Of a stretch of 64,000 nt of DNA, positions 1,361-29,968 are shown piece by piece. The first letter of the stretch is position 1, and each line of letters starts with the position of its first letter. The stretch lies in NCBI GenBank assembly GCA_030704615.1, contig CM060731.1, forward strand, positions 40,672,001-40,736,000, given 5' to 3'. The translations under genes and the position numbers were made by a program. Below the pieces are notes generated by a model. The model did no database searches. It was not told the origin of the DNA and was given only the letters and a program-made list of their open reading frames with translations. This DNA comes from Takakia lepidozioides. Its lineage: Eukaryota; Plantae; Bryophyta.

Positions 1361-1689
1361 GCATGGTGCCTCCTGAAATTCCTCATAACATCATGACTGA
1401 GCCTGCTGTTTGTGTTCCTTTGAGTGAGGCAGATGAATTGGCCATTGCCAACTTGAATGCACCTGCAAGGCAGAGGCAAAATGGTGGAAGGCACAGGCAA
1501 GCTCCACATGGGAGGTACCAGGCCAGTTGTGCTATGGTCTAGAGTTGGTTTCTGCTATTGCATGTATTTTTCCAGGGTTTACACTTGATACAACATGGTA
1601 CCTTGCATGGGTGGGAGTGACTGAGCTATTGGGGTGGGCAAAATTCTGACAAACACACTTTCATTGTGACAGTGAACTCCTAACAGTCA

Positions 1690-2330
1690 TGAAGCTGTAG
1701 CATGAATACTTTTCTGACCCTAGTCAATGGTGGCCCAATTGTGGCAAAAAGGTGAATGCCTGTTGGATTACAGAGAGTAGCAGATGCAATTGAGCATAGG
1801 AACTAGTGCGAGAAGTTGAGTTGGGTGTTTCCTAGAACAAATGTAGGCTGTTATTGTCAGCTACTATCAGCAAGGCAAGGATGTATGCATGATTTGTGCA
1901 GAGGCATGGATAGCTGAAGGAGCAGGGATAGAGTGTGGGTCCAGATTCATCCAAGAGGGCCACATTTCAAGCACAACATTGCCTATGATTCCTTGTGGAA
2001 GGATAGCTACAAGAAACCTGCATGGGTAGATGGTCAACTGGAAGCCGCAGCAGTAGCGGCACAATTGGTAAAATCGGGCGATGAGGGCACCTTCTTCAAC
2101 ACATTTCACCCTGTTTTTCCCTCTTATCAGAATTGGCCCTAAATTTCCATGTGAATTCTGCAAGTTAGTTGGTTGAGTGAATCTTTGATAGATTGGAGTG
2201 ACTTTGACATGATACTGCCAATGTGACAACAAGAAAGTATCCAAAAACATGTACAAGAGATGAGGAGAAGGTGTGGAATGAATACTTTTCTGATCCCAGT
2301 CAATGGTGGGACAACCGAGGCAAAAAGGGA
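1690..2330 (+). pseudogene. Two OSB-type PDF (WWDNR/PDFKH) motif exons, degenerate
   Basis: HEYFSDPSQWWPNCGKK, then intron 1752-1944 (GTGAATGCC...GTCCAG), then IHPRGPHFKHNIAYDSLWKDSYKKPAWVDGQL. A second half-motif EEKVWNEYFSDPSQWWDNRGKK lies at ~2260-2328. Confidence 0.7.
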
Positions 2331-2339
2331 ATGCCTGTC

Positions 2340-4380
2340 AGATTACCAGATGTCATTCTGAACACTGCCCTGGTGGATATATGCCAAATGTGGGTGCATC
2401 GAGGATGCCAAGGGAGTGTTCAACACTATGGCTAAACAAGATATGGTGTCGTGGAGTGCGATGCTTGCAGGGTATGCACAACAGGGGCGTGGGATGGAGG
2501 CTTTGGAGACCTATGAGCAAATGATGGGGGAAGGGTGAAGCCCGCACATAACGTTTGTGTGTGTTTGCAGTGCGTGTGGGAGCCTGGCAGCCCTGGAAAA
2601 GGGCAAAGAGATCCATCGTGACATCATCAAATTTGCAATTGTACCAGATGTCATCCTGAACATGACTGCTCTGGTGGACACATATGTGCCAAATGTGGGA
2701 GCATTGAGGATGCGAACGGAGTGATGGTGAACAAGATGTGCCAAGTCTGGCAGCCCTGCAAAAGGGCAAGAGGTGCATGGTTGCATCACCAAAGCTGGAA
2801 TTGTGATGGATTCTGAACAATGCCCTCGTGGACATGTATGCCAAATATATGTGAGAGCATTGAGGATGCGGGAGTGTTCAACACTATGGCTGAACAAGAT
2901 GTGGTGTCGTGGAGCGCGATGCTGCACAGTAGTGGTGCGGGATGGAGCCTTTGGAGACGTATCATGACCAAATGATGGGGGAAGGATGAAGCCCGACCAC
3001 AACACATTTGTGTGCGTTTGCAATGCGTGTGCAAGCCTGGCAGCTCTGGAAAAGGGAAGAGGTCCATGGTTTCATTGTCAAAGCTGGAATTGTACCTGAT
3101 GTGATTCTGGACAATGCCCTCGTGGACATGTATGCCAAATGTGGGAGCATCAAGGGCAAGCCTGGCAGCTCTGGAAAAGGGAAGATCAGGTCCATGGTTT
3201 TATTGTCAAAGCTGGAATTGTACCTGATGTGATTCTGGACAATGCCTCGTGGACATGTATGCCAAATGTGGGAGCATCAAGGGCAAGCCTGGCAGCTCAA
3301 GAAAAGGGAAGATCACGTCCATGGTTTCATTGTCAAAGCTGGAATTGTACCTGATGTGATTCTGGACAATGCCCTCGTGGACATGTATGCCAAATGTGGG
3401 AGCATCAAGGGCAAGCCTGACAGCTCTGGGAAAGGGAAGATCAGGTCCATGGTTTCATTGTCAAAGCTGGAATTGTACCTGATGTGATTCTGAACAATGC
3501 CAGGTCCATGGTCTCATTGTCAAAGCTGGAATTGTACCTGATGTGATTTTGGATAATGCCCTCGTGGACATGTATGCCAAATGTGGGAGCATCAAGGGCA
3601 AGCCTGGCAGCTCTGGAAAAGGGAAGATCAGGTCCATGGTTTCATTGTCAAAGCTGGAATTGTACCTGATGTGATTCTGGACAATGCCCTAGTGGACATG
3701 TATGCCAAATGTGGGAGCATCAAGGGCAAGCCTGGCAGCTCTGGAAAGGGAAGAGGTCCATGGTTTATTGTCAAAGCTGGAATTGACCTGATGTGATTCT
3801 GAACAATGCCCTGGACATGTATGCCAAATGTGGGAGCATCAAGGGCAAGCCTGGCAGCTCTGGAAAAAGGGAAGATCAGGTCCATGGTTTCATTGTCAAA
3901 GCTGGAATTGTACCTGATGTGATTCTGGATAATGCCCTCGTGGACATGTATGCCAATGTGGGAGCATCAAGGGCAACCTGGCAGCTCTGGGAAGATCAGG
4001 TCCATGGTTCATTGTCAAAGCTGGAATTGTACCTGATGTGATTCTGGACAATGCCCTAGTGGACATGTATGCCAAATTTGGGAGCATCAAGGGCAAGCCT
4101 GGCAGCTCTGGAAAAGGGAAGAGGTCCATGGTTTCATTGTCAAAGCTGGAATTGTACCTGATGTGATTCTAAACAATGCCCTCGTGGACATGTATGCCAA
4201 ATGTGGAAGCATCAAGGGCAAGCTTGGCAGCTCTGGAAAAAGGGATGAGGTCCATGGTTTCATTGTTAAAGCTGGAATTGTACCTGATGTGATTCTGAAC
4301 AATGCCCTCGTGGACATGTATGCCAAATGTGGGAGCATCAAGGATGCGAAGGCAGTTTTCCAACACTATGGCTCTTGGAG
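2340..4380 (+). pseudogene. PLS-class pentatricopeptide repeat pseudogene
   Basis: S, P and L motifs read across frameshifts: PDVILNTALVDxYAKCG, [48 protein letters not shown]. Confidence 0.9.
3030..4341 (+). repeat. Tandem array of ~120-128 bp PPR-derived units (about 10 full plus 1 partial)
   Basis: GCAAGCCTGGCAGCTC...GCCAAATGTGGGAGCATCAAG recurs at ~3030, 3154, 3281, 3409, 3596, 3724, 3843, 3971, 4091 and 4216. A partial unit starts at ~3502. Confidence 0.95.
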
Positions 4381-7300
4381 TGATTTTGACATGAACCAGC
4401 GAAGGGGAGAAAGTGGGGCCTCAACAGACGAGTTGAAAAGCACTAGTTAAAAAGCACTGGCGCTTGATAGGGTGGGGCAAAATTTAGGCTGGGCTGATCA
4501 TTGATATCCCGGACGTAGTGTAAAAAAGACGGTTGTGAGTGAAGTACACCTGTAAAAAAAAAAACCCTGCTGTCCAAAAAGGGAGAGTCACAAAGAGCAA
4601 GGCACTTTGTCCAAGCTTCTCGACATCTAGCAACAATGTGGACAGGGAGGGAGTCATTGGGAACAATTTTGTAAGGTGGCGAAGAAAACCTTGTCTGAGG
4701 ATCACTGATATTTCTCTAGTACGGTTGGACTAGTAGAGATTGAAATCCGTGCTCAGCTCAGCTTCAGATTGGCTTATTGTGAGGGTATGGTTGACTGGAC
4801 AGAAATGGGATTGACATTGCCGGGCTCACAAATTTTGAGACGACATGTGGTAGTTTTATCTATAGCTTCTCAAAGCAATTGTTGTACATTGTTGATTATA
4901 GTGTGACATTCTCATAACGATATTGTCGTCAGCTGCATGAGCAATGCATCTTTTTGGATTGCTGGTTCCCGGAGGAATTATATGTGACAGGACAGAGGGC
5001 AAGTTATAGCCAATAGTTGTAGGTAGTGTTCAATATTGAAGAGAATTCTATGCCCTTTCGGTTCTGCCGATCTCCTTCTCATTTTACTTGAGGTTGTCTA
5101 TTTTGAGAGCTTTGATGTTTGGATGAAAATGCATTTTGGCATCAACTTAAAGGGATGGCCTGCACTGGTGGGCATTCAGATTCTAAACGAGCTGGCAAAG
5201 AAAAACTACAAGTCCCACAGCCCTCTACATGCAGACCCCATAACCCTAATAACCTTTTTGAACTTTTTAAATTCTCTAAACAAAAGTCTATACGTGGTAC
5301 CCTAGATGGATTGCCACGTGGTTTTTTCATTATTATAAAATGCATTATGCCACGTGGCACAATGCGGTGCGACGCGGCGTTTAACATATAGTTTTTTAAT
5401 TTTTTTTAATTTAATTTAAATTTTTAAATCAATTGCGTCTCGCCACGTGGCGCGGCAGCAGCGGCTGCACTATGGTATATATGACTGCAGTGAGAGATAT
5501 CACTTGGTTCATATGACTGTAGTCATCCGGACCGTACCATCCTGTACTCATTGTATTGACTTGGTTTGCACGACTTACAGTCATAGAAGTCATATGTACC
5601 GTTTATGACTGCAGAATATTCATATATACAGTCATAAATACCACGATATGTTGTAGTGATATTAGGCATGAGTTTAATAAGAGGGCAAAACAGGCTGAAA
5701 ATAGGTTGAAGAAGAAGGTGCCCTCACGGCCTGCTAAGACCAAGTTGACTTTCTCTCTTGCACCAATGAGCTAACTTACAGAATTCAATATGCATATCAG
5801 GCCCGAGTCTGATAAGAGGGCAAAACAGGCTGAAATAGGTTGAATCAGGAAATGAATCAGCGGGCTGCTAAGACGAAGCTGATTCTCCCAAGATATTTGT
5901 AAACATCAGGAAGAATACCGTACTAACAGGAGCCAAAAGCCCACATTTGCAGGATGGACAAAACTTCTTCACATCCTACATTAAGGAAAAGCCACACTGT
6001 AGGTGAAAAAAGAAGGGGCATGAAACCCTTCTGGTAAACTATATTTAACTGTTTCTTGAGCAATGATCCATGGCCCTGCCCTATGACATCAACCTACTTG
6101 TTCTTTCTAAAATGACTCAGACCCTACTTAATTCATTCTAAATCTATTTATGACCAGAGACTTTATACCCTTATCCACGCCGCAGCGGAAGAGAAGACAT
6201 GGACAGGGCTGAGGTTATCTAAATTGTTATTGGGTCTCTTTAGTGAACAGATCATCATATATGCCAGAGTTCTTCTTCCCTAAATATGTCATCATTGAAA
6301 AATCACAGGGTGTACATTCTGATCCTTATACAGCTTCAGATCCTATCCACAGTGTAAACATATCAGAGATACCCCACTGGCCCATACTTGGACTAGGTAA
6401 GTGATGCAGAAATATGTGTGCCACTTACTCTAATGTAAACTAGAATGCAAAGGCCCAAGTTTCTACATATGAGCTCTCCTTCTCCTTCTTTATTAATACT
6501 ACAGCTATCTAAGAAACAGATCCCCTTTGGCATGATATTGCTACCCCTTCATATCCTGCCCATGGATTGTACACTGATGCATGGTATTTTGACATCATTC
6601 ACATCTACTTAAATGAAAATGCAAAACCCTAGCTTCTCTATTTCATTTTTTTCTCTTTATTTCCCTTAGCATGAAGAGGGCATGATATCACAAAGCCCCC
6701 ACTTTTAACTCCTCCTTAAAACTGCATTTTAACTATTTGAAAGACCTTTATGCCCCACTGATTGTAGATCTCACTCTATGAAGACAGGGATTCAAGACCT
6801 AGAATCGGGGCATGAAGGCGTGCACGATGATGGGACAACCGCGATCGCAAGGTGTGGCTTTTCTCAATGTACAATGACAAGCGGAGCTGGTGGGATAGGG
6901 GGCAGACACGGACTCAAGCCCTAGAATCGGGGCATGAAGGCATGCACGATGGTGGGACAACCGCAATCGCGGGGTTTGATACTCATGGGAGAAGGAACAG
7001 CATTCTGAATTACAGTAGGAGGTCATGAAAGTGCTTGAGTGCTATGGAATGGGTGTCTCTGCTGGTGAAGTGTTGCTGGTGTACTGCCTTTAGATGTTGC
7101 TCATGCCGGCGGTACAATCAGTAAAGTAGGGGATGTCTTGTGTGAAGAGATGGTGAAAGGATTGTTGAACATCTGCTGAACTTAGTTGGAAGGAGGACAC
7201 AAATGAAGGATAGTGGGGAAGAATGCCAATGACATATGAAGAGGGCAATGTACCTACTATGGGGGTAGGCTATAGCTCCTCCAGGGCATGTTGAATAGAG

Positions 7301-18587: not shown

Positions 18588-19953
18588 ATGGCTAGAGGAA
18601 TATCAAGGAAGAAGTCGATATCAAAGTCAACAAGAGCAGGCTTGCAATTCCCAGTAAGTAGGCTAGCTCGCTACTTGAAGCAAGGCAAATATGCTGCACG
18701 TGTGGGGGCGGGGGCACCTGTATATCTCGCTGCAGTCCTTGAATATCTTGCTGCCGAGGTAGAGATGCAAATCACAAGAAATATTATATTGGTTACATGA
18801 ATCATAGTATGTTTTCATAAATTGTCTGAATATTAAATATATTATATTAAAATTATATATGTATGTATTTAAAAATGACACAAATACTCAAGATCAACAT
18901 TGTATTGCTTATAAAACATTTGCAAATATAACTTTGTGCCTTCAGAAATATCATCATAATGTTCATGTTGCAAGACATGTTTAAAACCATTTAACCTTTG
19001 AGCGCATTAACATATAAATAACTTAAGAATCCATGCGTCTGGTCTTTAAATTGTTTTACCATATAAGTAACTTGATGCTTATTCATATTGATTTGTTGGT
19101 TTTTCTCTTTTTAAACTTCAATTCAACTTTGTAGAGCACCATGATTGACAAGGGTTGTGGAGACTATGTCCATTAGGACCTTAAAATATCTTACAATGCA
19201 TCATGATTGCATATTAAATCTGAATATGACATAATTCATCATGATGTACAAAACCTCACAATGTGCAATAAGAATATAATTACATTGTAATTATGTTATT
19301 CATGATATTTATCACTATATATTTATTTAGATCAATAATATCAAATCTGTTTTGACCATAATCAGCCATAGTTGCATGCATTATCAAAATGAGCATGAGT
19401 TTCATCCATGTTGGCCGTTGATAGGACTTACAAACTTGTACTTTATTTAGAGTAAATATCAGTTTTTGTTATATACGTTAATGTCAAGTTTATAAAAATA
19501 ATTTACTCATCAATAATGAGAAATAATGTATTCAAATATCATTTTGAGTTTACTATGGATCATTTCATGAGTTAGAGTGTGCTTTTGGTGAAAATTCAAT
19601 ATAGTATAATTATACATGTTTGTATGTTATTATATATATAAAATAATAATTTAAAATGACATGTGTCATGGGATGTTGTCCTCCGACTCAAATAGGTGCT
19701 TGAGCTAGCTGGAAATGCATCTCGGGACAACAAAAAAACGAGAATCATACCTCGTCATATTCAATTAGCTGTCAGAAATGACGAAGAGTTGGGCAAACTA
19801 CTGGCGGGTGTCACAATTCCGCATGGTGGTGTATTGCCTAACATCCATGGTGTTCTCTTGCCTAAGAAAACTGTCGCAACAAAACCTGAGCGTAGACATC
19901 CCAATGTGGCTTTGAAGAAGCATCTACAGAAGACTCATGGTTATCGACATTGA
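18588..19953 (+). CDS. H2A: Histone H2A variant, 142 aa; exons 18588-18758 and 19696-19953
   Basis: [30 protein letters not shown] | [44 protein letters not shown]. The GT-AG intron is at the conserved plant H2A position. A (CT)n tract lies upstream. Confidence 0.93.
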
Positions 19954-21809
19954 ACATATTTCACTATGCATATTGTCGATGAGAATCAATCTACAACTTG
20001 AACGTACAAATAATGATAACAAAGAGTTTCAAAATTGTTATGTCCAAGTAACAACAACGAAGTATATCTGAAGGCAACATAATTTTTTTAATAGCTTCTA
20101 AATATATCACTTTAAAAAAAGTAACATAAACATAAACATAAATATATGCTTATCATAACTACACCTAAGACCATCATTCGTTAATGAACTATTGTATATG
20201 ATATCACTCTACTAGTCAACCATCATTACATACAATGTTTTAATCGTATTTTTTTATTTAAATATAATACATATTATTATATCGTATCATATAACGTCGT
20301 CTCATTGTCCAACACTCTAATATGATAGATACAATATCGATAGTAATGTTGTGATTAAAATAACCTAAACTAAAATAATATTAAAGATGAAGTACTTTAA
20401 CTTGTATTATAATATATATCATCAAGTGTTTCTTCATGTAGTATATGCCATTTTTACCTATAACTGATAAATCATTGTAACATCTTTGTGGATAGTAACA
20501 TGTATGCATGACAATCTAATAATCTTGATATGATTTTAGATACTTGTTTGTGCATATTTTGTGACTATTTGACTTCAACTTAGGTGATGGATTATTCATG
20601 ATGCAATAATTAGCGTTACATTTTTAAATTTGGTTGCATTGTATGTTCTTATCCTCCACATTGCATAGCACAACAATAAACCCACAGGAAATGTGGTTTT
20701 TGTTTATTTTGTTGATTTCTGTGAGGCATTTGACTCAAGCTTTGGACCATCTATATGCTATTCAAGCCATGCCATGTTATAGCAGATGTCATAAGAATGG
20801 TATATATATATTCTTGATAAGAGGGGTCCATAGAACTTAGCCCTCCAATTTTATTGATGCGGGAAAAACAAATTGATAGTTGGGAAAGCCGAGGTAGATG
20901 TTTTTGGATGTTTTTGTCAAATACGGTTGGTCCCTCATACCCACTAGTTTGTAGATTAATTATTGACAGATGGTCTTGGGTACCGTCGTGGCTATTCTAC
21001 TTTATGCAAACAATATTTTTAATTCTTTCCCATTAAGCTAGGTCTTCAATGCCTTAATTACTATCTTGGGCTCTATTTTTCCCTATATTTGAGGTATACT
21101 AGCCGATAAGCCACTTGTTCCAGACAAACATTATGATATATATTTTAAAAAAAAAAATTGCTCTGGTCTCTTCTTTGTCGCTATGTACTGCAGGCTTCTT
21201 TTTTATACCGTGATCCCTCTTCTCTTCGTTATTTTGGGAGGAAGCAGGGTCTTCCTGGGTTAGCCTCAATGGAGCCTTATGAGGTTATTTTGTTTTCATT
21301 GTAATTGTTATTGTAAAACTTACAATTGTAATTGCAGAATGTTGTGGAATGGATGCCATAGTTTTAGAAGTATTTCCCATTTCAGGTATTTTGATGGTAT
21401 TCTTGATGGTATTTTGGTTTCATGTTCTCTAAATTCATCCCACGGTCATAGGACCCTCGGGTATAGGCGCCGTATGTTTCGGTTGACGTGATGGATGTTG
21501 ACATGCACGTCAACATTCGACACCATGGCAACCTGCTGGCATTACGCTCACGCCACGTCACCAGTGTGTGAGCGTACGCTCACATGCTCACGCGTGAGGC
21601 TCATGCAGTTGCGTCGTTGGTTTCTTGGTCGTCTAGCTTTGTGTTGGCACCATGCCTTCGCTGCAACTCCTCCTAACTTCAAATACAAACTTTTCTTTGG
21701 CGGGTCTGCCCCTTCGAACAGCAATGTCCAGACCTCCTCGGAAGGCAAGTCTATAGTGTCAGTCCCACCTAAGCCAGTCACAACAGCCCCTGTCCAGGTC
21801 TCAGAGGTA

Positions 21810-23939
21810 GAGAAACGATTGAAGAGAAAGGAATATGAGAGACATAGAGCTTTTCAAGACTTTTGGAGTGCAAAACTTTCTTGGGCCGAATATGTCAAGG
21901 GTGAGGATGGTCAAATGTAGCAGGTTCGGTGCAAGGTATGTATTGCCATTGATGGCAAGGAAAGATTATTGGCTCTAAAGTGGTAGGAAGAAGGCCAAGG
22001 CAGGGAACCCAGATATGGAGGAAGGAACCATCTATTACAATCCCGAATCCTTACACCGAGAAATTGTATGTTGCAAGTCTTCATGCTAATGTAGCAACAA
22101 AGTTAGCCATGGGAGAGGTAGTTGACAGGAGGATTCAATTTGCCATTATTTTTTGGTTGCTTCGAGAGGGTCGTCTTATGACAGAGTATGAGTCGGTGAA
22201 GGATCTGCTTGGATTCTTGAAGCTCAAGAATCTTCCAAGGAAACACTGGTCAGACAATTTGGGCTGGGACATCGCCGAGTGCATGCACGATGTGGTGCGC
22301 CAACGCACTAAAGAGGTCTTCCAAGCCTCTCATTTTGTTGCTGTTAGTGCAGATGAAGCTAGCACGAAGGAAAATGAGACATGGCTCTGCATACATGGGT
22401 ATGTGGTGTCCGATTAATGGCGTCGAGTCCCTCTACTGCTGAACTTGGAGAGAGTGACTGTGGAGGCAACTGCAGACAACCTATATACAGCCGTGCTCAA
22501 TGCTATTATGAGCCATGGAGGCCTAACTGACATACAAATCGCTGAAAGGTTCATGTCGATGGGAGTTGACGGGGGTTATGTATTTGAGGGTTGCCGCACT
22601 GGGGTCAACCAGCAGTTGAAGGAGAAAGTGGGGCCTTTCTTGGTACCTGTGCATTGTGCCGCACATCGTTGCAACTTGGCCATTCAGAGCCTTTCGAATC
22701 TTTTCATAGTGCACCGATTGGAGGATCTTTTACAATCTTTGAATCTATAAGCACGTACAGGAGCTGAAGAACTTCGCAGCTCTGTTAGAGACGAAAGATA
22801 ACAAAATCCTCTGAAACGTCAAAACTCGCTGGATCTCAATGTTGTCGCCAGCCAAGAGGGTTATGGTTGAGTTCAAGCCTCTTCTTTGCAAGCTGTGGGA
22901 GGATTTGACAAAGAATCCAACTGCTAAGAATAACTTTGCGAAGTTGCTAGATCTAGAATTGTTGTTGGGTATGTAATGTTTGATGCCCCTTCTTGAGCTT
23001 GCTCACTTGGTCATCAAGCTTGCACAGAACTGAGATATATATGTTTGTGACTTTGTGGATGCGATCCGCCTTTGCCGCACCAAGTTGCATGAGTTCTACC
23101 TGTCTGCACAAGAGAAGTTTCAAGATCAGGCTTTTGCAACATACCGCAACCTTGTGGCAGGCCGTTATGAGGCTTTGCCAATCATTTTCCAGTGGTGTGA
23201 TGTTGTAAATGCCGAGGCTTGTGCTATTGTATTCAATGGTAGATTTGCTTGGATACATTGGACGAACCCTTTGACTGGTGTGCTTGACCTTGTGTCACAT
23301 GAGACCTTCACGACAGTCAGACTGTCAGTTGAGCGCCAGTGCTTGGAGGCAGCCGAGCAATTGTCTATGGAGCTCGATCGGCGTTTCCCCAATCAGGAAA
23401 TGATGAATACTTTGGGGGTTGTATACCCAAGGTATTGGGTAGATGAGGATATTGAAGACCTTTTTGCATGTCATTTGGAAGTGATCAAGTCATTCTATTG
23501 TGTGGAAAAGAAGCTTGGGGATCTGATGGTTCCAGCTCCACTTAACAGCATGAAGCTTGATTCCCAAGCTACAACCTTCAAGACAACTATGTTGCACAAT
23601 GCCAAGCAGATATTGGAGGCTGATGGGAAGCAATGTAGCCATTTCAGGGTAATGTGGCTCCTTGTGTCCAGCTCTAAGATGCTTGTTCAAAGCATGTCTG
23701 AATACATAAAACTTGCGAAACTTGCCATGATTCACCTTTTGGGCTCAGTCGAAGATGAACGGGTCTTCAGCACTGTGACCTTCATGAACGGCAAGGTTCA
23801 GAACTGCTTGACAGATCACCTTGATCTTACTGTGAGGATGTTCTCACATGATTTCTACACCATGGAGAATTTTCCTTATACCCAAGCCATTTCAGCGTGG
23901 ATGAGCAGGAAGAAGTGTCGTTATGTAGTAGAATCTTAG
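21810..23939 (+). mobile_element. hAT transposase pseudogene (ZNF862-like type)
   Basis: VRCKVC zinc-finger remnant, VAVSADE, MGVDG, HCAAHRCNLA, KTRWISM, and the C-terminal dimerisation motif GSVEDERVFS..HLDLTVRMF. Multiple stops. A terminal repeat-like end ..CCAAAATAAAATTGTTG is at 24594-24610. Confidence 0.9.
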
Positions 23940-24610
23940 GCAATCTGGAATGGTTGCAGGGTTTCGGTGATCTGGTGTTTTGCTGTAGTCACCCTCTTTT
24001 GTTTGGAAATGTGATGGGCCAAGCAACCACTCATGATCCATGGCCCCTACTGATTCTTTCCTATGGGCTGCTTTCCTGGATCTTTGGCTTCCTTGCATAC
24101 ATGTGAAGCTTGATACAAGCATATGGTTTCCTAATGATTGCTCTAATAATTTTTCCTTACCTTCAGTGGCGTGCACACTATATCCATTCCCTGGCCATAT
24201 AATTGGTTATGAATGTTTGCATATCTGACTTGTGTGTGTGTATTAATGAGACTTGTGTTGCAGTTGGGTAAGGTCTATGAGGTCGAGGTTCAACCCCTCC
24301 AGAAGTCATTGTCTTATCATCGTGTATGCTTTTGTTTGCTGGTTTGTTGCTCAAATGCCAAGCTCTTCATGCATAATCGCCATTTCACCTATATGTGCAA
24401 CTCGACAGTAGCCAAAAAAACCCACCAGGAACTGACCAATTCGCAGACAACGATAGAAAAATTCTGCAACTCGCCACTAGCAACAACAAAATTCCATCCA
24501 CTCGCCACAAGTTACTACTACTGTAACAACCGTCTAGTCACACTCCATATAGGCAGCCATTAGGTGGAGGCCACCTCACCGATCAAATTGAAACCAAAAT
24601 AAAATTGTTG

Positions 24611-25660
24611 GATCCGATAACCTCACTGTAGATGAGGAAATTCAGGTCTTGGCTCAAGATATTTGCCAGAAAGATTTTCCAAGTGGCTTGAATCATCGCT
24701 TTTCCTGGTATTGCACTAGGAATTTCTTTATTAGGGCTGCCTCTGAAATGAGGGCTATTATGGACGTTGATTTCTCTATTGAAGATACATTATGGGAAGA
24801 ATTCTCTGATACAAGCCCGGATTCTCAAAAAATTGGAAAGTTGATCTTGCTCATTACGACATTCAGAATATCCGGAAGCCGTTTGATTGCCCTATCCTTG
24901 GTGTACTCGACACTTTCCAAAGACTTCAAGAGCGCAGACCTATGTGGACTGCAGAAAAGCCTGCACCACACCCGTTATTTGTGACACCATTGCCGAAATT
25001 CAAATATGAGGGATCATGTCTAGTTTTCGAAAGGTCCAATAGGACGCAATACGTTGAGCGGGATGACTAAGCGTATGACCTTGGACATTCTAGGATTGGA
25101 TACCAAAATCATTAGCAACAAATCAGGAAGGAGTACCGGAATTACACAAATGCTTGAAGGATATGTGCCACCACGCATTGGCATGGCCATTGCAGGGCAC
25201 AGGGGTCAAGAGAGTTACGAGAAGTACTCTCGAGTGAATAGTATGTTGAAGGAACGCGCTGCTCAGAGAGTTATATCAGGTGAGTTGCGTAATGGCAAAC
25301 CTATCTTGTTTTTAGATGCACACGGAGAGGATATGGTGCAAATATGGTGCTATACAGGGTTCAGCAACTACTAACGTTGATCCACCTCGAGAAGTTCTTG
25401 GTCAAATTTCAGGCAATACGGTGCCTACTGAGGTTCATGGAACCAACAAGAGCATGGCAATTATGCGGGTTCCTGACAAGGGGAACGTTGATGAGTATCT
25501 CAATATTCCTGATTCACTTTTTGTACAAGCTGAGCAAGAGCTGGTTTCAAGTGATGCTTCTATGCTTCGTCATTTTCCATCGTCTTCTAACACACATGTT
25601 GGCCACAATTTCTCAAACTTTCAGAATTGTACAATCACTTTGAATCTATCATCTGATTTA
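24611..25660 (+). mobile_element. Crypton-like (DUF3504-type) tyrosine recombinase, catalytic C-terminal half, degenerate
   Basis: SDNLTVDEEIQVL..PSGL..NFFIRAASE (R), SKNWK (K), PIGRNTL, ISNKSGRSTGIT (K/HxxR), IAGHRGQESYEKY (H, Y), and tail FQNCTITLN. Read across 2-3 frameshifts and one stop. Confidence 0.8.
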
Positions 25661-26589
25661 GAAGCTGCCAAGTTGCTTATAGCTGCTTTCGTAGGCAAGG
25701 ACCAGCTTGACAATGCACATACTACCAAATTACAGTACATAGATTGGATTGCACATTGCAATCAGATTGTGGGTATTCATTTCAGCACATTGCCCGAAAT
25801 TGCAATATACATCATGTTGGCATATTGTTCAAACTTGTAGTATAGATTCTGTTGATTTGAGGGGTGCCACCTTATGTAGCATGTACTATTGCAAGCCTTG
25901 CAACTAATTGAAGACCAAAACAACCAGTCAAAGAGTGGAATGCACAAAGGAAAGAAACTAAGATAATTTTCTGATGCAACAAATGGTGTAAAGAAAAACT
26001 ATGACTTAAGTAAAAGATATGATCCTAAAAGGAAAAGAAAAATAGAGAGGTGTGCATTACGACCTACATAATCGGCAGATTTGGAGAACCAGTGCATTAT
26101 GGACACCATATTGCGCTGGCGGCTCAGGCGGGACATTACGAATATTAACAAAGAAATTATTAGAAATTCTTTACGAATATGAATATCATGGGTTCCATGA
26201 TATTTCAAATATCGACAACTGTTTTGTAAAGAATGATCTATACCCACTGAATGTTTTTCGATAAGTTGCATACTAAAATAAAACGCCACTCGTTTGTTAA
26301 TAGTTAATACCGTATCCCTGAGGTCTTGCAAGCCTTAGCTGTGTATGTTGGATGCCTTGCACCCTGGCATGACTTATTGACAAATTTTCTGATGGGCATA
26401 AATTTTTGCATCCATGTACTTATTTGGTCTATTTATTGGCCGTTCATCGAACAAAAAATATATATTCCAATCGATCTTTTCTCTCTCTCTCTCTCTCTAT
26501 TCCAATCGATCAATTTCTATTTGAAGTTAAAATCATCAATAATGTAAGAATTGTCGGAAAAAAAAACCAAAAAAAAAAAAAAAAAAAAA

Positions 26590-26896
26590 AACAGAGCAGA
26601 AGAGATTGTCGGCACCGATCATCACTTCTGCCCTGTTTTTTTTTTTAATTGAAAAAAACGGAGAAAAAAAAAAAAAAAAAAACAGAAGTGATGATCGGTG
26701 CCGACAATCACTTCTGCTCTGCTCTAACAAATTGAGACACGCTTCCTTGTGCCGCAGCTCTGCTCTGGATAGCCGCACTGCATTGCTTCACTGATGCAAA
26801 CACAGAGCAGAACAGAAGTGATTGTCGGTGCCGATCATCACTTCTGATCTGTTTTGGCATTTGGGTAGAGGTGATGATCGTCGACGATCATCAATT
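26590..26896. repeat. Cluster of palindromic ~34-bp units
   Basis: CAGAAGTGAT(T/G)(G/A)TCGG(T/C)(G/A)CCGA(T/C)(C/A)ATCACTTCTG at ~26597, ~26683 (inverted) and ~26813, plus a degenerate copy at ~26868. The first two are flanked by A/T tracts. Confidence 0.85.
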
Positions 26897-27385
26897 CTAT
26901 TTGATACTTGATACTTGATTTCCAAACATGCAAGGGCTTAGTATGTAGACCATATTTAAATCAGTCTATTCCATCTTGGCGATTTTTACGTAAGAAAGCC
27001 TCAATTTCACTCCGGCTAACTTTGATGGTTGGGGATCTGCACTGGGAACTGCTGCTACACCTTGTTATCAACTGATACAAAAGCTTGTTGAAACTAGCAT
27101 GCTCATTCTTCCTTTCATGGGAGGGATAAAGATCTCACTTCGGCAATCGAACACTTATCAAATTGCAGTTTATGACACGAGGGCCGGCGGTGGGATGGAT
27201 GTTAAAGATGTAATCTGCAATGACTGGAAAAGGTAAATAATTCCGCGGAAATAGGCACCTACCTCACGCCTCTGGGCTCACGATCTAGCATTTCCCCCTT
27301 CCGCCTGTTTTGTCCGCGGTTATAGGTCTTAGCAGTCAAACAGTACTAGATCACCATTCCCAACACATATGGGGAGAAAGTTATC

Positions 27386-27514
27386 TGGCTTTAAATCCCG
27401 ATGAAAATAGCCATGCTTATGCATGTAAGCAAGCGCCTGCAACACTTGAAAACACCAATTTCGTGCTTTTGCTTCAGAAAATAGTTTAGCTTTCAACTGA
27501 TATAGATCGCACTC
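27386..27514 (-). pseudogene. Single exon fragment of a MAK/CDKF-4-like Ser/Thr kinase
   Basis: TGCAG acceptor, then [41 protein letters not shown]. No flanking exons recognised. Confidence 0.8.
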
Positions 27515-28399
27515 CTGCAATAAGCAAAGTGCACAACCATCACGCACAATAAAACCTTGCATTCAACCAGAACCGAAACAACCACCATTGTTTGTTCAAG
27601 CAGTTATACACGACGCACAAATGTTCTCAGAACTGCAACCCTAAATTATAATTCAAGCCTTCTCATTCAAACTTTGTGTGAAAACATGGCATTGGATTAC
27701 TGCGAAAAACAATCCCATGGAGTGTGATGTACTTCCTGCTTGACAAGAAAAAATATGAGGACTGCGCCTATGGAAATGACGTGGCATGACGTGACGTGAC
27801 GTCAACCACGCTGGCGAGGACTGCTGACGTGCCATAACACCCGTGAACCAACGTGGCGACAACTGCTGGCGTGGCGTGAGCTTGACTGCGCTCACGTGCT
27901 CACATGCTCACGCGGAGGCGTCCCCCCCAAGAAACTGACGCGAAAGAAGAGATACTTGGGACTCGAGAGGTTGCAATGCTGGGTTTTTATCATTGCCACA
28001 TCTGATCTTCTCTTCCCTCTCCATGAGCTATTCGTAGATATCCCTAACTTACATTCATTGATCAATCTCAATGTTAGTACATGAAATCAACATAAACATG
28101 AAAAGCCGGCGGCCGCCCACATTTACTGCATATGATCTACAAAATTCAAATCATCTGAACAGTGAACATTCAAAGAAAAATTGCAGAAACCAAGAATTAT
28201 AGGCTAAAGTAATAAAGTGCCGGAAGTGAGCCACTGAGCTTCACCATTCATTACATTGCAAGCAACTAAAAATTTCCTTCAAAGTTCATATCTGCAAATA
28301 TGTTGTCCATTCTCCCATCACATCCCAGCAGCCATTGAATGCACGCAGACATATTGCAACCGGTAGGTAAACCTCTCTAGCTAGAAACGTGCTGACGAT

Positions 28400-28690
28400 A
28401 GATTACAAGAACGAAGGTGGTTAGAGGCGAACCCTGTGAACGGCCCGGATGTCATCTGGCGATCAGCCCTACATATGACGATTATGGTGGCGATAGGGAG
28501 GTGAAGAGGTGGATGTACGTTAGGCGATCTAGACCATCCCCCCCATCGCAGCGTGGCGACACTGCGTGCTTTTGGATTCTCATTTTGGCGAATTTGGCCC
28601 ATTTTCGTCATTTTTTTTAATTATATGCGATTCGCATGGGCCTCTCACATGTCGCCAAGTGGTGATAAATTGCCAAATAAAAAAACGTTG
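28400..28690 (-). mobile_element. hAT-type terminal and subterminal end reading leftward
   Basis: Minus strand CAACGTTTTTTTATTTGGCAATTTATCACCACTTGGCGAC with repeated TCGCC motifs. It matches the end at 24594-24610. Confidence 0.6.
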
Positions 28691-29302
28691 ATCGGATCTC
28701 TTCACCTGCTTCCCAAGTCCAGTAGTAAAGGAGCATTTTACAGCTACATCTCCAGCTACAATTGCCTTCTGATACCGTACATCTGTCATGATACAAAAAA
28801 ATTCCTGAGGCTTGCTAATTTCGATAGATCGTTGATTGCACCTTGCTCTGATTATTCGACCAATGCCTCGCATCAATGCTTGAAGGGATTGCGGGGGATA
28901 CATTGTACCATCTTGTTTGTCTACTTCAAGTATGAAGTACGACAACATTTCAACAAAGCCTCGAATATCGTGCTCTTCAGACATACCCTCAATAGATTTA
29001 GATATGTCGTAACCTTTCTCAAGGTGCCGGTCATCAAAAGCCTTCCTGGCCCATTGGTCTGACTGCTCGCTATTGCGACTCCCACTCGCATCTACAGTCT
29101 TTTTCTCTTTATCAGTGATAGTCTCGTGTCGTCTACTGGTGACTCTCGTTTCTTCGTCTGAAGATGAATCAGACCCTGAGCCTATTCCTGGAATGTGATC
29201 TACCACATCAGTAGATATGACGGTGGTAGGGGGAACCAATATGGCAGACACCGGAACAAAAGAAACAGCGACAGCGGGCATTGATGCATTAGGGATCGAC
29301 AT
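28691..29302 (-). mobile_element. Crypton-like tyrosine recombinase, N-terminal (core-binding) half
   Basis: QWARKAFDD..MLSYFILEVDKQDGTMYPPQSLQALMRGIGRII..GLGKQVKRSD matches the F..E.RK.DG..YPP.SL..L..GI pattern of DUF3504/Crypton proteins. Confidence 0.8.
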
Positions 29303-29968
29303 AGCAAGTAAAGAATTTGCACCAAATGCTGCTGCAAAGGAGTCGGTACATCTTCAATATTGTAAGAACTGCCAACGCATGCAGATAAGGCGTTACCAAA
29401 CTACCGCAACAATTGTAGAAGAAGAATTAACAGATAATTCAGCTAGAGAGAGAGAGTAATTCAGCCTTCACGGGTTCGGATCCGGGTCCTGATTAATTGA
29501 TTAAAAAAACTAAAAAAAAGAGATTAATTAGAAATTATTATTTTCTGTCATATTTAATTAAACAAGCGGCTAGTCGCATAATGGCTACACCCTAAGACTC
29601 TAAGTAGAAAATTTCCTTGAGATGTTACATTGAAATAAGATAATCACATATTCAAAGTATATTTTAAACATGTTCTGTATAAGAGGAAAATATTTTTATT
29701 TATAAAATAGAAAGGCCCTGAGAGAACTTTATTGATGTATGAATTATATATTGATGTATGATATTACAACACTGATCTTCAGACTTACAAATTATTAAAA
29801 TATTGAAATGCTTGTTGAAATACTAACTGGAGTACTGAAATACTTGTTGAAGAACTAGCTGAAATATTCAAATACTTGCTTGAAATACTTGCTAAGAAAC
29901 TTGCTGAAATATTGAAATACTTGCTGAAAATCTTTTTTGAAATACTAAAATACTGATATTTTATTGTA

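Follow-up and report, generated by a model that had tools for sequence, protein, structure and literature searches.

Inversions produced by transposases are known from maize, at hAT ends, and also from Antirrhinum (Tam3) and Drosophila (P and hobo). In this work we examine a stretch of 64,000 nucleotides (nt) of the Takakia lepidozioides genome (assembly GCA_030704615.1, contig CM060731.1, positions 40,672,001 to 40,736,000 of the forward strand; hereafter the window, to which all unlabelled positions refer), in which a putative Crypton-like gene has been split into two oppositely oriented halves beside the remnant of a hAT-like element. The closest described counterparts are the reversed-ends inversions of maize Ac/fAc, in which one transposon end lies outside the inverted segment and one inside, an 8-base-pair (bp) duplication is present at both, and the DNA between the two ends is lost; these inversions span about 81 kilobases (kb) and arose from a known progenitor in which Ac and fAc lie 331 bp apart (bioRxiv 10.1101/2021.03.08.434479). 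The second system to be considered is that of the tyrosine recombinases, whose sites consist of inverted arms around a core of 6–8 bp (PMC3212892).

The N-terminal half of the gene (N-half; 28699–29302, minus strand) and its C-terminal half (C-half; 24619–25374, plus strand) each adjoin one copy of the same 8 bp, and the two copies are inverted relative to one another. The features concerned are the following:

24611–24618, no strand: target-site duplication copy 1, GATCCGAT, from the letters and from an unsplit paralogue in which the 8 bp fit both sides.
28691–28698, no strand: target-site duplication copy 2, inverted, ATCGGATC, from the letters and the paralogue contig.
24619–25374, plus strand: C-terminal (catalytic-domain) half of the putative Crypton-like gene, with two in-frame stops, from tblastn with Riccia homologues, the translation and a DUF3504/Phage_integrase box-II match.
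28699–29302, minus strand: N-terminal half of the putative Crypton-like gene, from the list of open reading frames (ORFs), a weak QRICH1 match and phmmer.

At the left junction, a 17-nt A/T-rich arm (24594–24610) is followed by the first copy and then directly by plus-strand coding sequence beginning AACCTC. At the right junction, an 18-nt arm (28673–28690) is followed by the inverted copy and then by the minus-strand ORF, in which the gene's own sequence closes with the codons for GKQVKRSD. Exactly 8 bp are duplicated, and the bases flanking them differ between gene and arm at both junctions.

Alignments with liverwort proteins tie the two halves together. In a local tblastn, residues 30–176 of the Riccia homologue P0001 fell on 29131..28691 (minus strand) and residues 175–353 on 24613..25335 (plus strand). 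Since P0001 spans the junction without a break, the N-half and the C-half are parts of one gene, and the overlap of two residues is the duplicated 8 bp. We also inverted 24611–28698 locally in a copy of the window, for use as an alignment target; P0001 then gave a single high-scoring segment pair over residues 30–353 (E 1e-68) and P0003 aligned over residues 21–375 (E 8e-72), so that the Riccia homologues run colinearly through the rejoined junction. The first-pass annotation of this DNA, made by a model from the letters, had described a recombinase gene split into halves that are inverted around 8 bp, and the junction letters together with this colinear alignment bear the description out: the split gene is real, and both the split and the exact 8-bp duplication are confirmed.

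Contigs from three DNA runs of one sample (X1, X2 and X3), placed on 23700–29600, provide a further view of the undisturbed gene. A contig of 302 nt, present in two runs, joins 24619–24837 to 28691 on the opposite strand, with the 8 letters fitting both sides. It carries 13 differences and 2 gaps relative to 24619–24837 (about 94% identity) and comes from a paralogue whose gene is unsplit, with a single occurrence of the 8 bp.

On the side away from the gene, each copy of the 8 bp is bordered by one of the two arms, which we compared with the termini of related elements. The arms and the regions inward of them are these:

24594–24610, plus strand: 3' terminus, a terminal inverted repeat reading inward CAACAATTTTATTTTGG, from the junction letters, fuzzy search and terminus comparison.
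28673–28690, minus strand: 5'-type terminus, a terminal inverted repeat reading inward CAACGTTTTTTTATTTGG, near-identical to one terminus of the related locus L005.
24311–24593, plus strand: 3'-type subterminal region of the hAT-like element, with TCGCCA at 24377, 24471 and 24502.
28034–28672, minus strand: 5'-type subterminal region of a hAT-like element, low copy, with a periodic GGCGA array, from motif positions and contigs.

The arms at 24610 and 28690 are identical at 14 of 18 positions. With up to four errors allowed, the 28690 arm is found at seven places in 128 kb (both strands), itself and the 24610 arm included, and the similarity between the two arms is not chance. The termini of hAT elements start YARNG; of the two starts seen here, CAACG agrees with this form and CAACA departs from it at the fifth base.

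Three metagenome loci with relatives of this transposase (L001, L005 and L008) were compared at the level of their DNA. The L001 element (1502–7166) has termini beginning CAGGGTT and a perfect 8-bp duplication, GATTGTAG; that of L008 (271–5458) has termini beginning CAGTG and a perfect 8-bp duplication, CTCCCTTC, the two duplications being unrelated in sequence. The termini of the L005 element (1982–6726) are nearly identical to the window arms, and both begin CAAC; its flanking 8-mers, GATTTATG and GTAAAAAT, differ and provide no matching duplication, and it is therefore not counted as a bona fide element. Either the L005 ends are mis-called, or the duplication has decayed, or this copy has also been rearranged. 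Furthermore, the 28690 arm matches the left terminus of L001 at 14 of 18 positions, and the eight termini of the four loci share a common form, namely CA, three bases, a run of T and then G or GG. That related hAT copies end in similar arms beside unrelated 8-bp duplications, a check proposed with the first-pass annotation, is seen in two cases, L001 and L008.

Short motifs are also concentrated inside both ends. Inside the 28690 end, GGCGA occurs at 28426, 28458, 28489, 28523, 28555 and 28587 (a period of about 32 bp) and TCGCC at 28652, which makes seven such motifs per 300 bp, the maximum of the window, whose mean is 0.26; the corresponding stretch inside the 24610 end holds three. Measured inward from the 24610 terminus, TCGCCA stands at 105, 136 and 230, compared with 105, 146, 210 and 274, in the same orientation, at the 3' end of L008. 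The 28690 end, in turn, has one motif near its tip and then an array of opposite polarity, like the 5' end of L008. Because the polarity of the motifs matches the L008 ends, the window has one 3'-type and one 5'-type end, both of one hAT lineage. Paralogous contigs over 27927–28303 indicate that the body on the 28690 side is itself repeated DNA, and 28522–28565 is absent from one copy. Judged by these termini and motifs, the comparison shows both arms to be transposon ends and not recombinase sites.

To the left of the 24610 end lies what is left of a transposase gene:

21735–23939, plus strand: hAT-like transposase remnant, its pieces in two frames, from the mapping of L001 products and from Atlas features.

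The ORFs of the remnant occupy 21495–21920, 21980–22417, 22445–22750 and 23055–23939, and the L001 products are colinear on 21735–21983, 22271–22456, 22442–22904 and 23346–23939; the products of L005 and L008 likewise fall colinearly within 21735–23939. Atlas features of the last transposase ORF fall in Dimer_Tnp_hAT clusters in 27 of 30 matches (score 0.96), and weaker Atlas leads connect an earlier ORF with the DUF4371 and ZBED5/FAM200 ribonuclease-like (RNase-like) families. PF05699 was matched weakly by 8 of 18 transposase relatives (best E 0.0013), and a profile of these 18 relatives gave nothing relevant among PDB sequences. A conserved SVEDER-x-FS block is presumably the hAT motif with the last catalytic glutamate. 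The distance from the transposase stop to the terminus at 24610 is 671 bp, and the corresponding distances in the L001, L008 and L005 set are 548, 569 and 645 bp, so that the spacing is the usual one for the family. Just to the left of the remnant lies a plus-strand histone H2A gene with an intron (18588–19953; Histone_H2A_C E 2.3e-17).

The family of the split gene is recognised through its relatives. A phmmer search with residues 1–204 of the N-half against 1.8 billion representatives gave 89 matches (best E 8.7e-31), of which the top full-length ones are hypothetical proteins of the liverwort Riccia sorocarpa; others include a lycophyte protein and the Marchantia protein P0037, which bears the source name 'DUF3504 domain-containing'. 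In Pfam, the N-half matches QRICH1 at E 0.019, below the cut-off, and the C-half gave no DUF3504 match. Three more distant phmmer matches, P0045, P0084 and P0024, carry QRICH1 and DUF3504 with strong scores, and P0084 aligns to 25024–25200 of the C-half. By this indirect route, the gene is assigned as probably Crypton-like and DUF3504/QRICH1-related.

The two halves have fared differently. From its ATG at 29302, the N-half can be read without a stop as far as 36 codons into the transposon end (a 240-codon ORF, 28580–29302, minus strand). The C-half stays in one frame, which two stops interrupt (TGA at 24982 and TAG at 25051, the latter where P0001 has W), and the middle of its domain is degenerate. 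The frameshifts previously reported in the C-half are thus replaced by two nonsense codons in one frame, and these same stops bear out the earlier conclusion that this copy of the recombinase is now dead. At the HxxR box, this copy and both Riccia homologues have KSGR and P0084 has HSLR; GH and a subsequent Y are present in the C-half. With KSGR in that box, catalytic competence is not established.

Summed contig depths, a rough measure, reach about 3–4 times single-copy depth over 24685–26260, an indication that the C-half is common to several copies, together with some 900 bp of non-coding sequence on its 3' side:

25375–26260, plus strand: non-coding 3' flank, repeated along with the C-half at a rough depth of about 3–4 times single copy.

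We note that, with this depth and a 94%-identical unsplit paralogue, these DUF3504-related genes have, as a family, the behaviour of a repeat in a land plant; no land-plant Cryptons are listed in the Crypton survey by Kojima and Jurka in 2011 (PMC3212892).

An exact 8-bp duplication at both termini points to one transposase complex having joined both ends to one staggered cut, and we consider it very probable that a single hAT transposase event joined both ends to one 8-bp staggered cut in this way. The arrangement of the ends is not that of a simple insertion. Both have their body leftward on the plus strand and they lie 4.1 kb apart with no continuous element between them; inward from the 24610 end come the transposase and then the histone H2A gene, and inward from the 28690 end come repeats, with the 3' flank of the C-half beyond them. 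One end therefore lies outside the inverted segment and one inside, each beside one copy of the duplication, the two copies being inverted relative to one another, which is the topology of reversed ends.

We favour, at about an even chance, a one-step reversed-ends (alternative) transposition, in which integration and flip would have been a single event. A hAT-family transposase would have joined the 3'-type end (24610) and the 5'-type end (28690) to a cut in the Crypton-like gene, and the staggered 8-bp cut would have duplicated GATCCGAT. The two ends would have faced each other reversed, as ends of neighbouring elements or of an element and a fragment, and, because of this reversed facing, each would have stayed on its own chromosomal side. 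In the same event, the stretch from the 5'-type end to the target would have been flipped and the DNA lying between the two ends lost. Thereafter, the N-half would have kept its start and read into the transposon end, and the C-half, having lost its promoter, would have decayed.

The reading preferred in the first-pass annotation was of this kind. Its core, that a Crypton-like gene bears the trace of a past hAT event, is upheld by the arms, by the single occurrence of the 8 bp in the paralogue and by the stops; its further claim, one reversed-ends transposition, fits the topology exactly and is unproven, as the outer ends are missing and a two-step course gives the same junctions.

Several observations weigh against a one-step event. 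Fuzzy and pattern searches recovered no outer termini of the two postulated elements: 19953–21735, the interval from the histone gene to the transposase, gave no significant 5' terminus, and 25375–28000 gave no 3' terminus. There is exactly one 5'-type and one 3'-type end, as a single element would give, and there is no progenitor or alternative allele with which to compare the locus. In addition, the hAT assignment of the transposase protein is weak. The hAT transposase previously placed at 21.8–23.9 kb stands as a hAT-like remnant by its features and relatives, but its ORFs gave no direct Pfam match, even at E 10, and an AlphaFold model of the ORF at 23055–23936 was poor (predicted local distance difference test, pLDDT, 60) and returned only noise from Foldseek against the PDB. 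Finally, the left junction, 24610/24611, is bridged by no listed contig of the three runs. Two strings considered as the missing 5' end, 21191–21208 and 21686–21700 (plus strand), were set aside as within chance expectation once all query termini are counted; the string at 21191 matches the left terminus of L001 at 14 of 18 positions.

It is possible, if rather doubtful, that the locus arose in two steps, through an ordinary hAT-like insertion with its 8-bp duplication and, later, an unrelated inversion of about 5–6 kb. The breakpoints would then lie inside the element and downstream of the 3' flank of the gene, and the transposase part would have been turned together with the C-half. Identical junctions are expected from such a course; the neighbourhood has only one 5'-type and one 3'-type end, which make good mates, there is neither a GGCGA array nor a convincing terminus upstream of the transposase, and the two parts sum to about 3.7–5.5 kb, in line with the 4.7–5.7 kb that the related elements measure. 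However, this course needs a second, independent small inversion with a breakpoint that falls by coincidence in the element, and no breakpoint has been located, nor are there mediating inverted repeats at plausible breakpoints. Self-comparison for inversion-mediating repeats gave only motifs of 23–24 nt, 21546–21600 against 27859–27919, which show no clear homology whichever way they are oriented. Coding sequence for the N-terminus of the transposase on the 28690 side would be a sign of a single broken element; it was looked for and not found, and the N-terminus of the relative is of low complexity and unconserved, so that this search is uninformative.

That the true locus is a simple insertion and its segment was mis-oriented by the assembler is very improbable. 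The unbridged left junction would allow it, as would the high-copy and palindromic repeats at 26.5–28.0 kb within the inverted segment. However, three runs have exact contigs across the right junction (28492–28773 and 28406–28724), and no inverted repeat pair surrounds a candidate mis-oriented block. Furthermore, given a matching terminus and the 8 bp at each junction, the assembler could not have created either of them; the interior orientation alone could be wrong. In X1 and X3 nothing exact was placed on 23700–24684. Contig filtering leaves holes, and a hole by itself proves nothing; this one, however, crosses the left junction and does not end there, and one filtered contig would therefore span the junction. 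A possible reason for the filtering of long contigs over 23700–24684 in two runs is the likeness of H2A to human histones.

The contigs of X2 call for a caution of their own, as they stop and begin at the GATC of the duplication. One of them links two GATC sites, at 24611 and 25012, on opposite strands. X2 is probably a Hi-C library and this joint a Hi-C ligation, so that X2 joints at GATC are not to be read as rearrangements.

It is barely credible that the arms and the 8-bp core are tyrosine recombinase sites at which a recombinase, acting in cis or supplied by paralogues, flips the 4.1-kb segment as a switch: the flip does restore an in-frame gene and inverted arms around an 8-bp spacer, in the format of such sites, and paralogues exist that could act in trans, but each of the present sites has, as its two arms, a transposon terminus and unrelated coding sequence, the arms have hAT-type subterminal arrays and match hAT termini elsewhere, the 8 bp are ordinary coding sequence and single in the paralogue, the C-half has its two stops, the HxxR box is KSGR here as in the two Riccia homologues, and Cryptons are described as being without inverted terminal repeats (PMC3212892). 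No reciprocal joint and no exact-match rejoined gene were found among the contigs (one sample; contigs drop rare variants), the rejoined form appearing only as the 94%-identical paralogue. The self-inverting switch that had been offered as an alternative thus fails on the hAT-type arms found elsewhere, on the unsplit recombinase copy and, as far as this is testable, on the single orientation seen. It is likewise extremely unlikely that the termini and the 8-bp core still serve as a recombination or transposase substrate in trans, with the segment flipping in some cells or accessions and so toggling the gene.

Apart from the gene half and its flank, the inverted segment contains abundant repeats:

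26655–28033, no strand: high-copy repeats inside the inverted segment, at a depth of 20–60 times single copy.

Other copies of the high-copy repeat lack an insert of 437 bp (27329–27765; joints 27327/8 to 27766), whose minus strand holds part of a protein-kinase exon (ORF 27329–27562; Pkinase E 8.6e-12); the repeat looks to have captured a piece of a gene, or to have received one by insertion. In a run guessed to be RNA, contigs match 27446–27493 and 27548–27757, with differences. In addition, hairpin units of about 44 nt are clustered at 26560–26900, with the core CAGAGCAGAAGTGAT ... ATCACTTCTGCTCTG and long A/T runs on either side; at a depth of 25–70 times single copy, this looks like a very abundant family of miniature palindromic repeats. 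Finally, 21484–21600 and 27776–27919 both show, in the same plus-strand order, clusters of TGACGT/ACGTCA and then GCTCAC-type motifs. The latter stretch lies in a repeat of about 20-fold depth, and the two may be shared promoter-like modules; a clear alignment between them was not obtained.

The locus appears to be a clean natural fossil of a small transposase-made inversion outside maize Ac/Ds, in which one mobile element (hAT) would have disabled another (Crypton-like), and it would be further evidence that alternative transposition shapes plant genomes. Its termini and subterminal motifs can also be used to diagnose a hAT lineage that is poorly annotated and whose transposase is missed by Pfam. 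The multi-copy Crypton-like genes with their shared non-coding flank may, for their part, outlast the inversion in interest.

Set against known systems, the locus resembles switches of the Cre/lox and FLP/FRT type only in that, after a flip, there are formally inverted arms around an 8-bp spacer; unlike in those switches, the arms are transposon termini, the second site is without arms, the recombinase is broken and one orientation is seen. With the Crypton/DUF3504 elements the gene shares, by way of its relatives, a QRICH1-like N-terminal domain and a DUF3504-like C-terminal domain, and it is multi-copy here; it departs from them in that the direct Pfam matches of this copy are below threshold and its HxxR box is KSGR. 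The window ends are like those of the hAT elements of L001 and L008 (ZBED5/FAM200/DUF4371-like) in the form of the terminus, in the 8-bp duplication and in a terminus about 550–670 bp past the transposase stop, with transposase pieces 30–44% identical; the GGCGA subterminal motifs are shared with L008. Unlike the L001 and L008 ends, those of the window do not stand around one continuous element and have the same direction on the plus strand.

The nearest likeness is to the maize Ac/fAc inversions of Zhang and Peterson and colleagues, which also involve the hAT superfamily and new 8-bp duplication copies that are inverted. Unlike in maize, the segment here measures 4.1 kb, there is no known progenitor and no outer ends were recovered; by its closest homologues, which are liverwort and lycophyte proteins, the host is a non-seed land plant, and the target is itself a mobile-element gene. 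The mechanism is thus not new. Transposase-made inversions at hAT ends are known from maize, and what is new is a natural case, in a non-seed land plant, with a Crypton-like gene as the victim.

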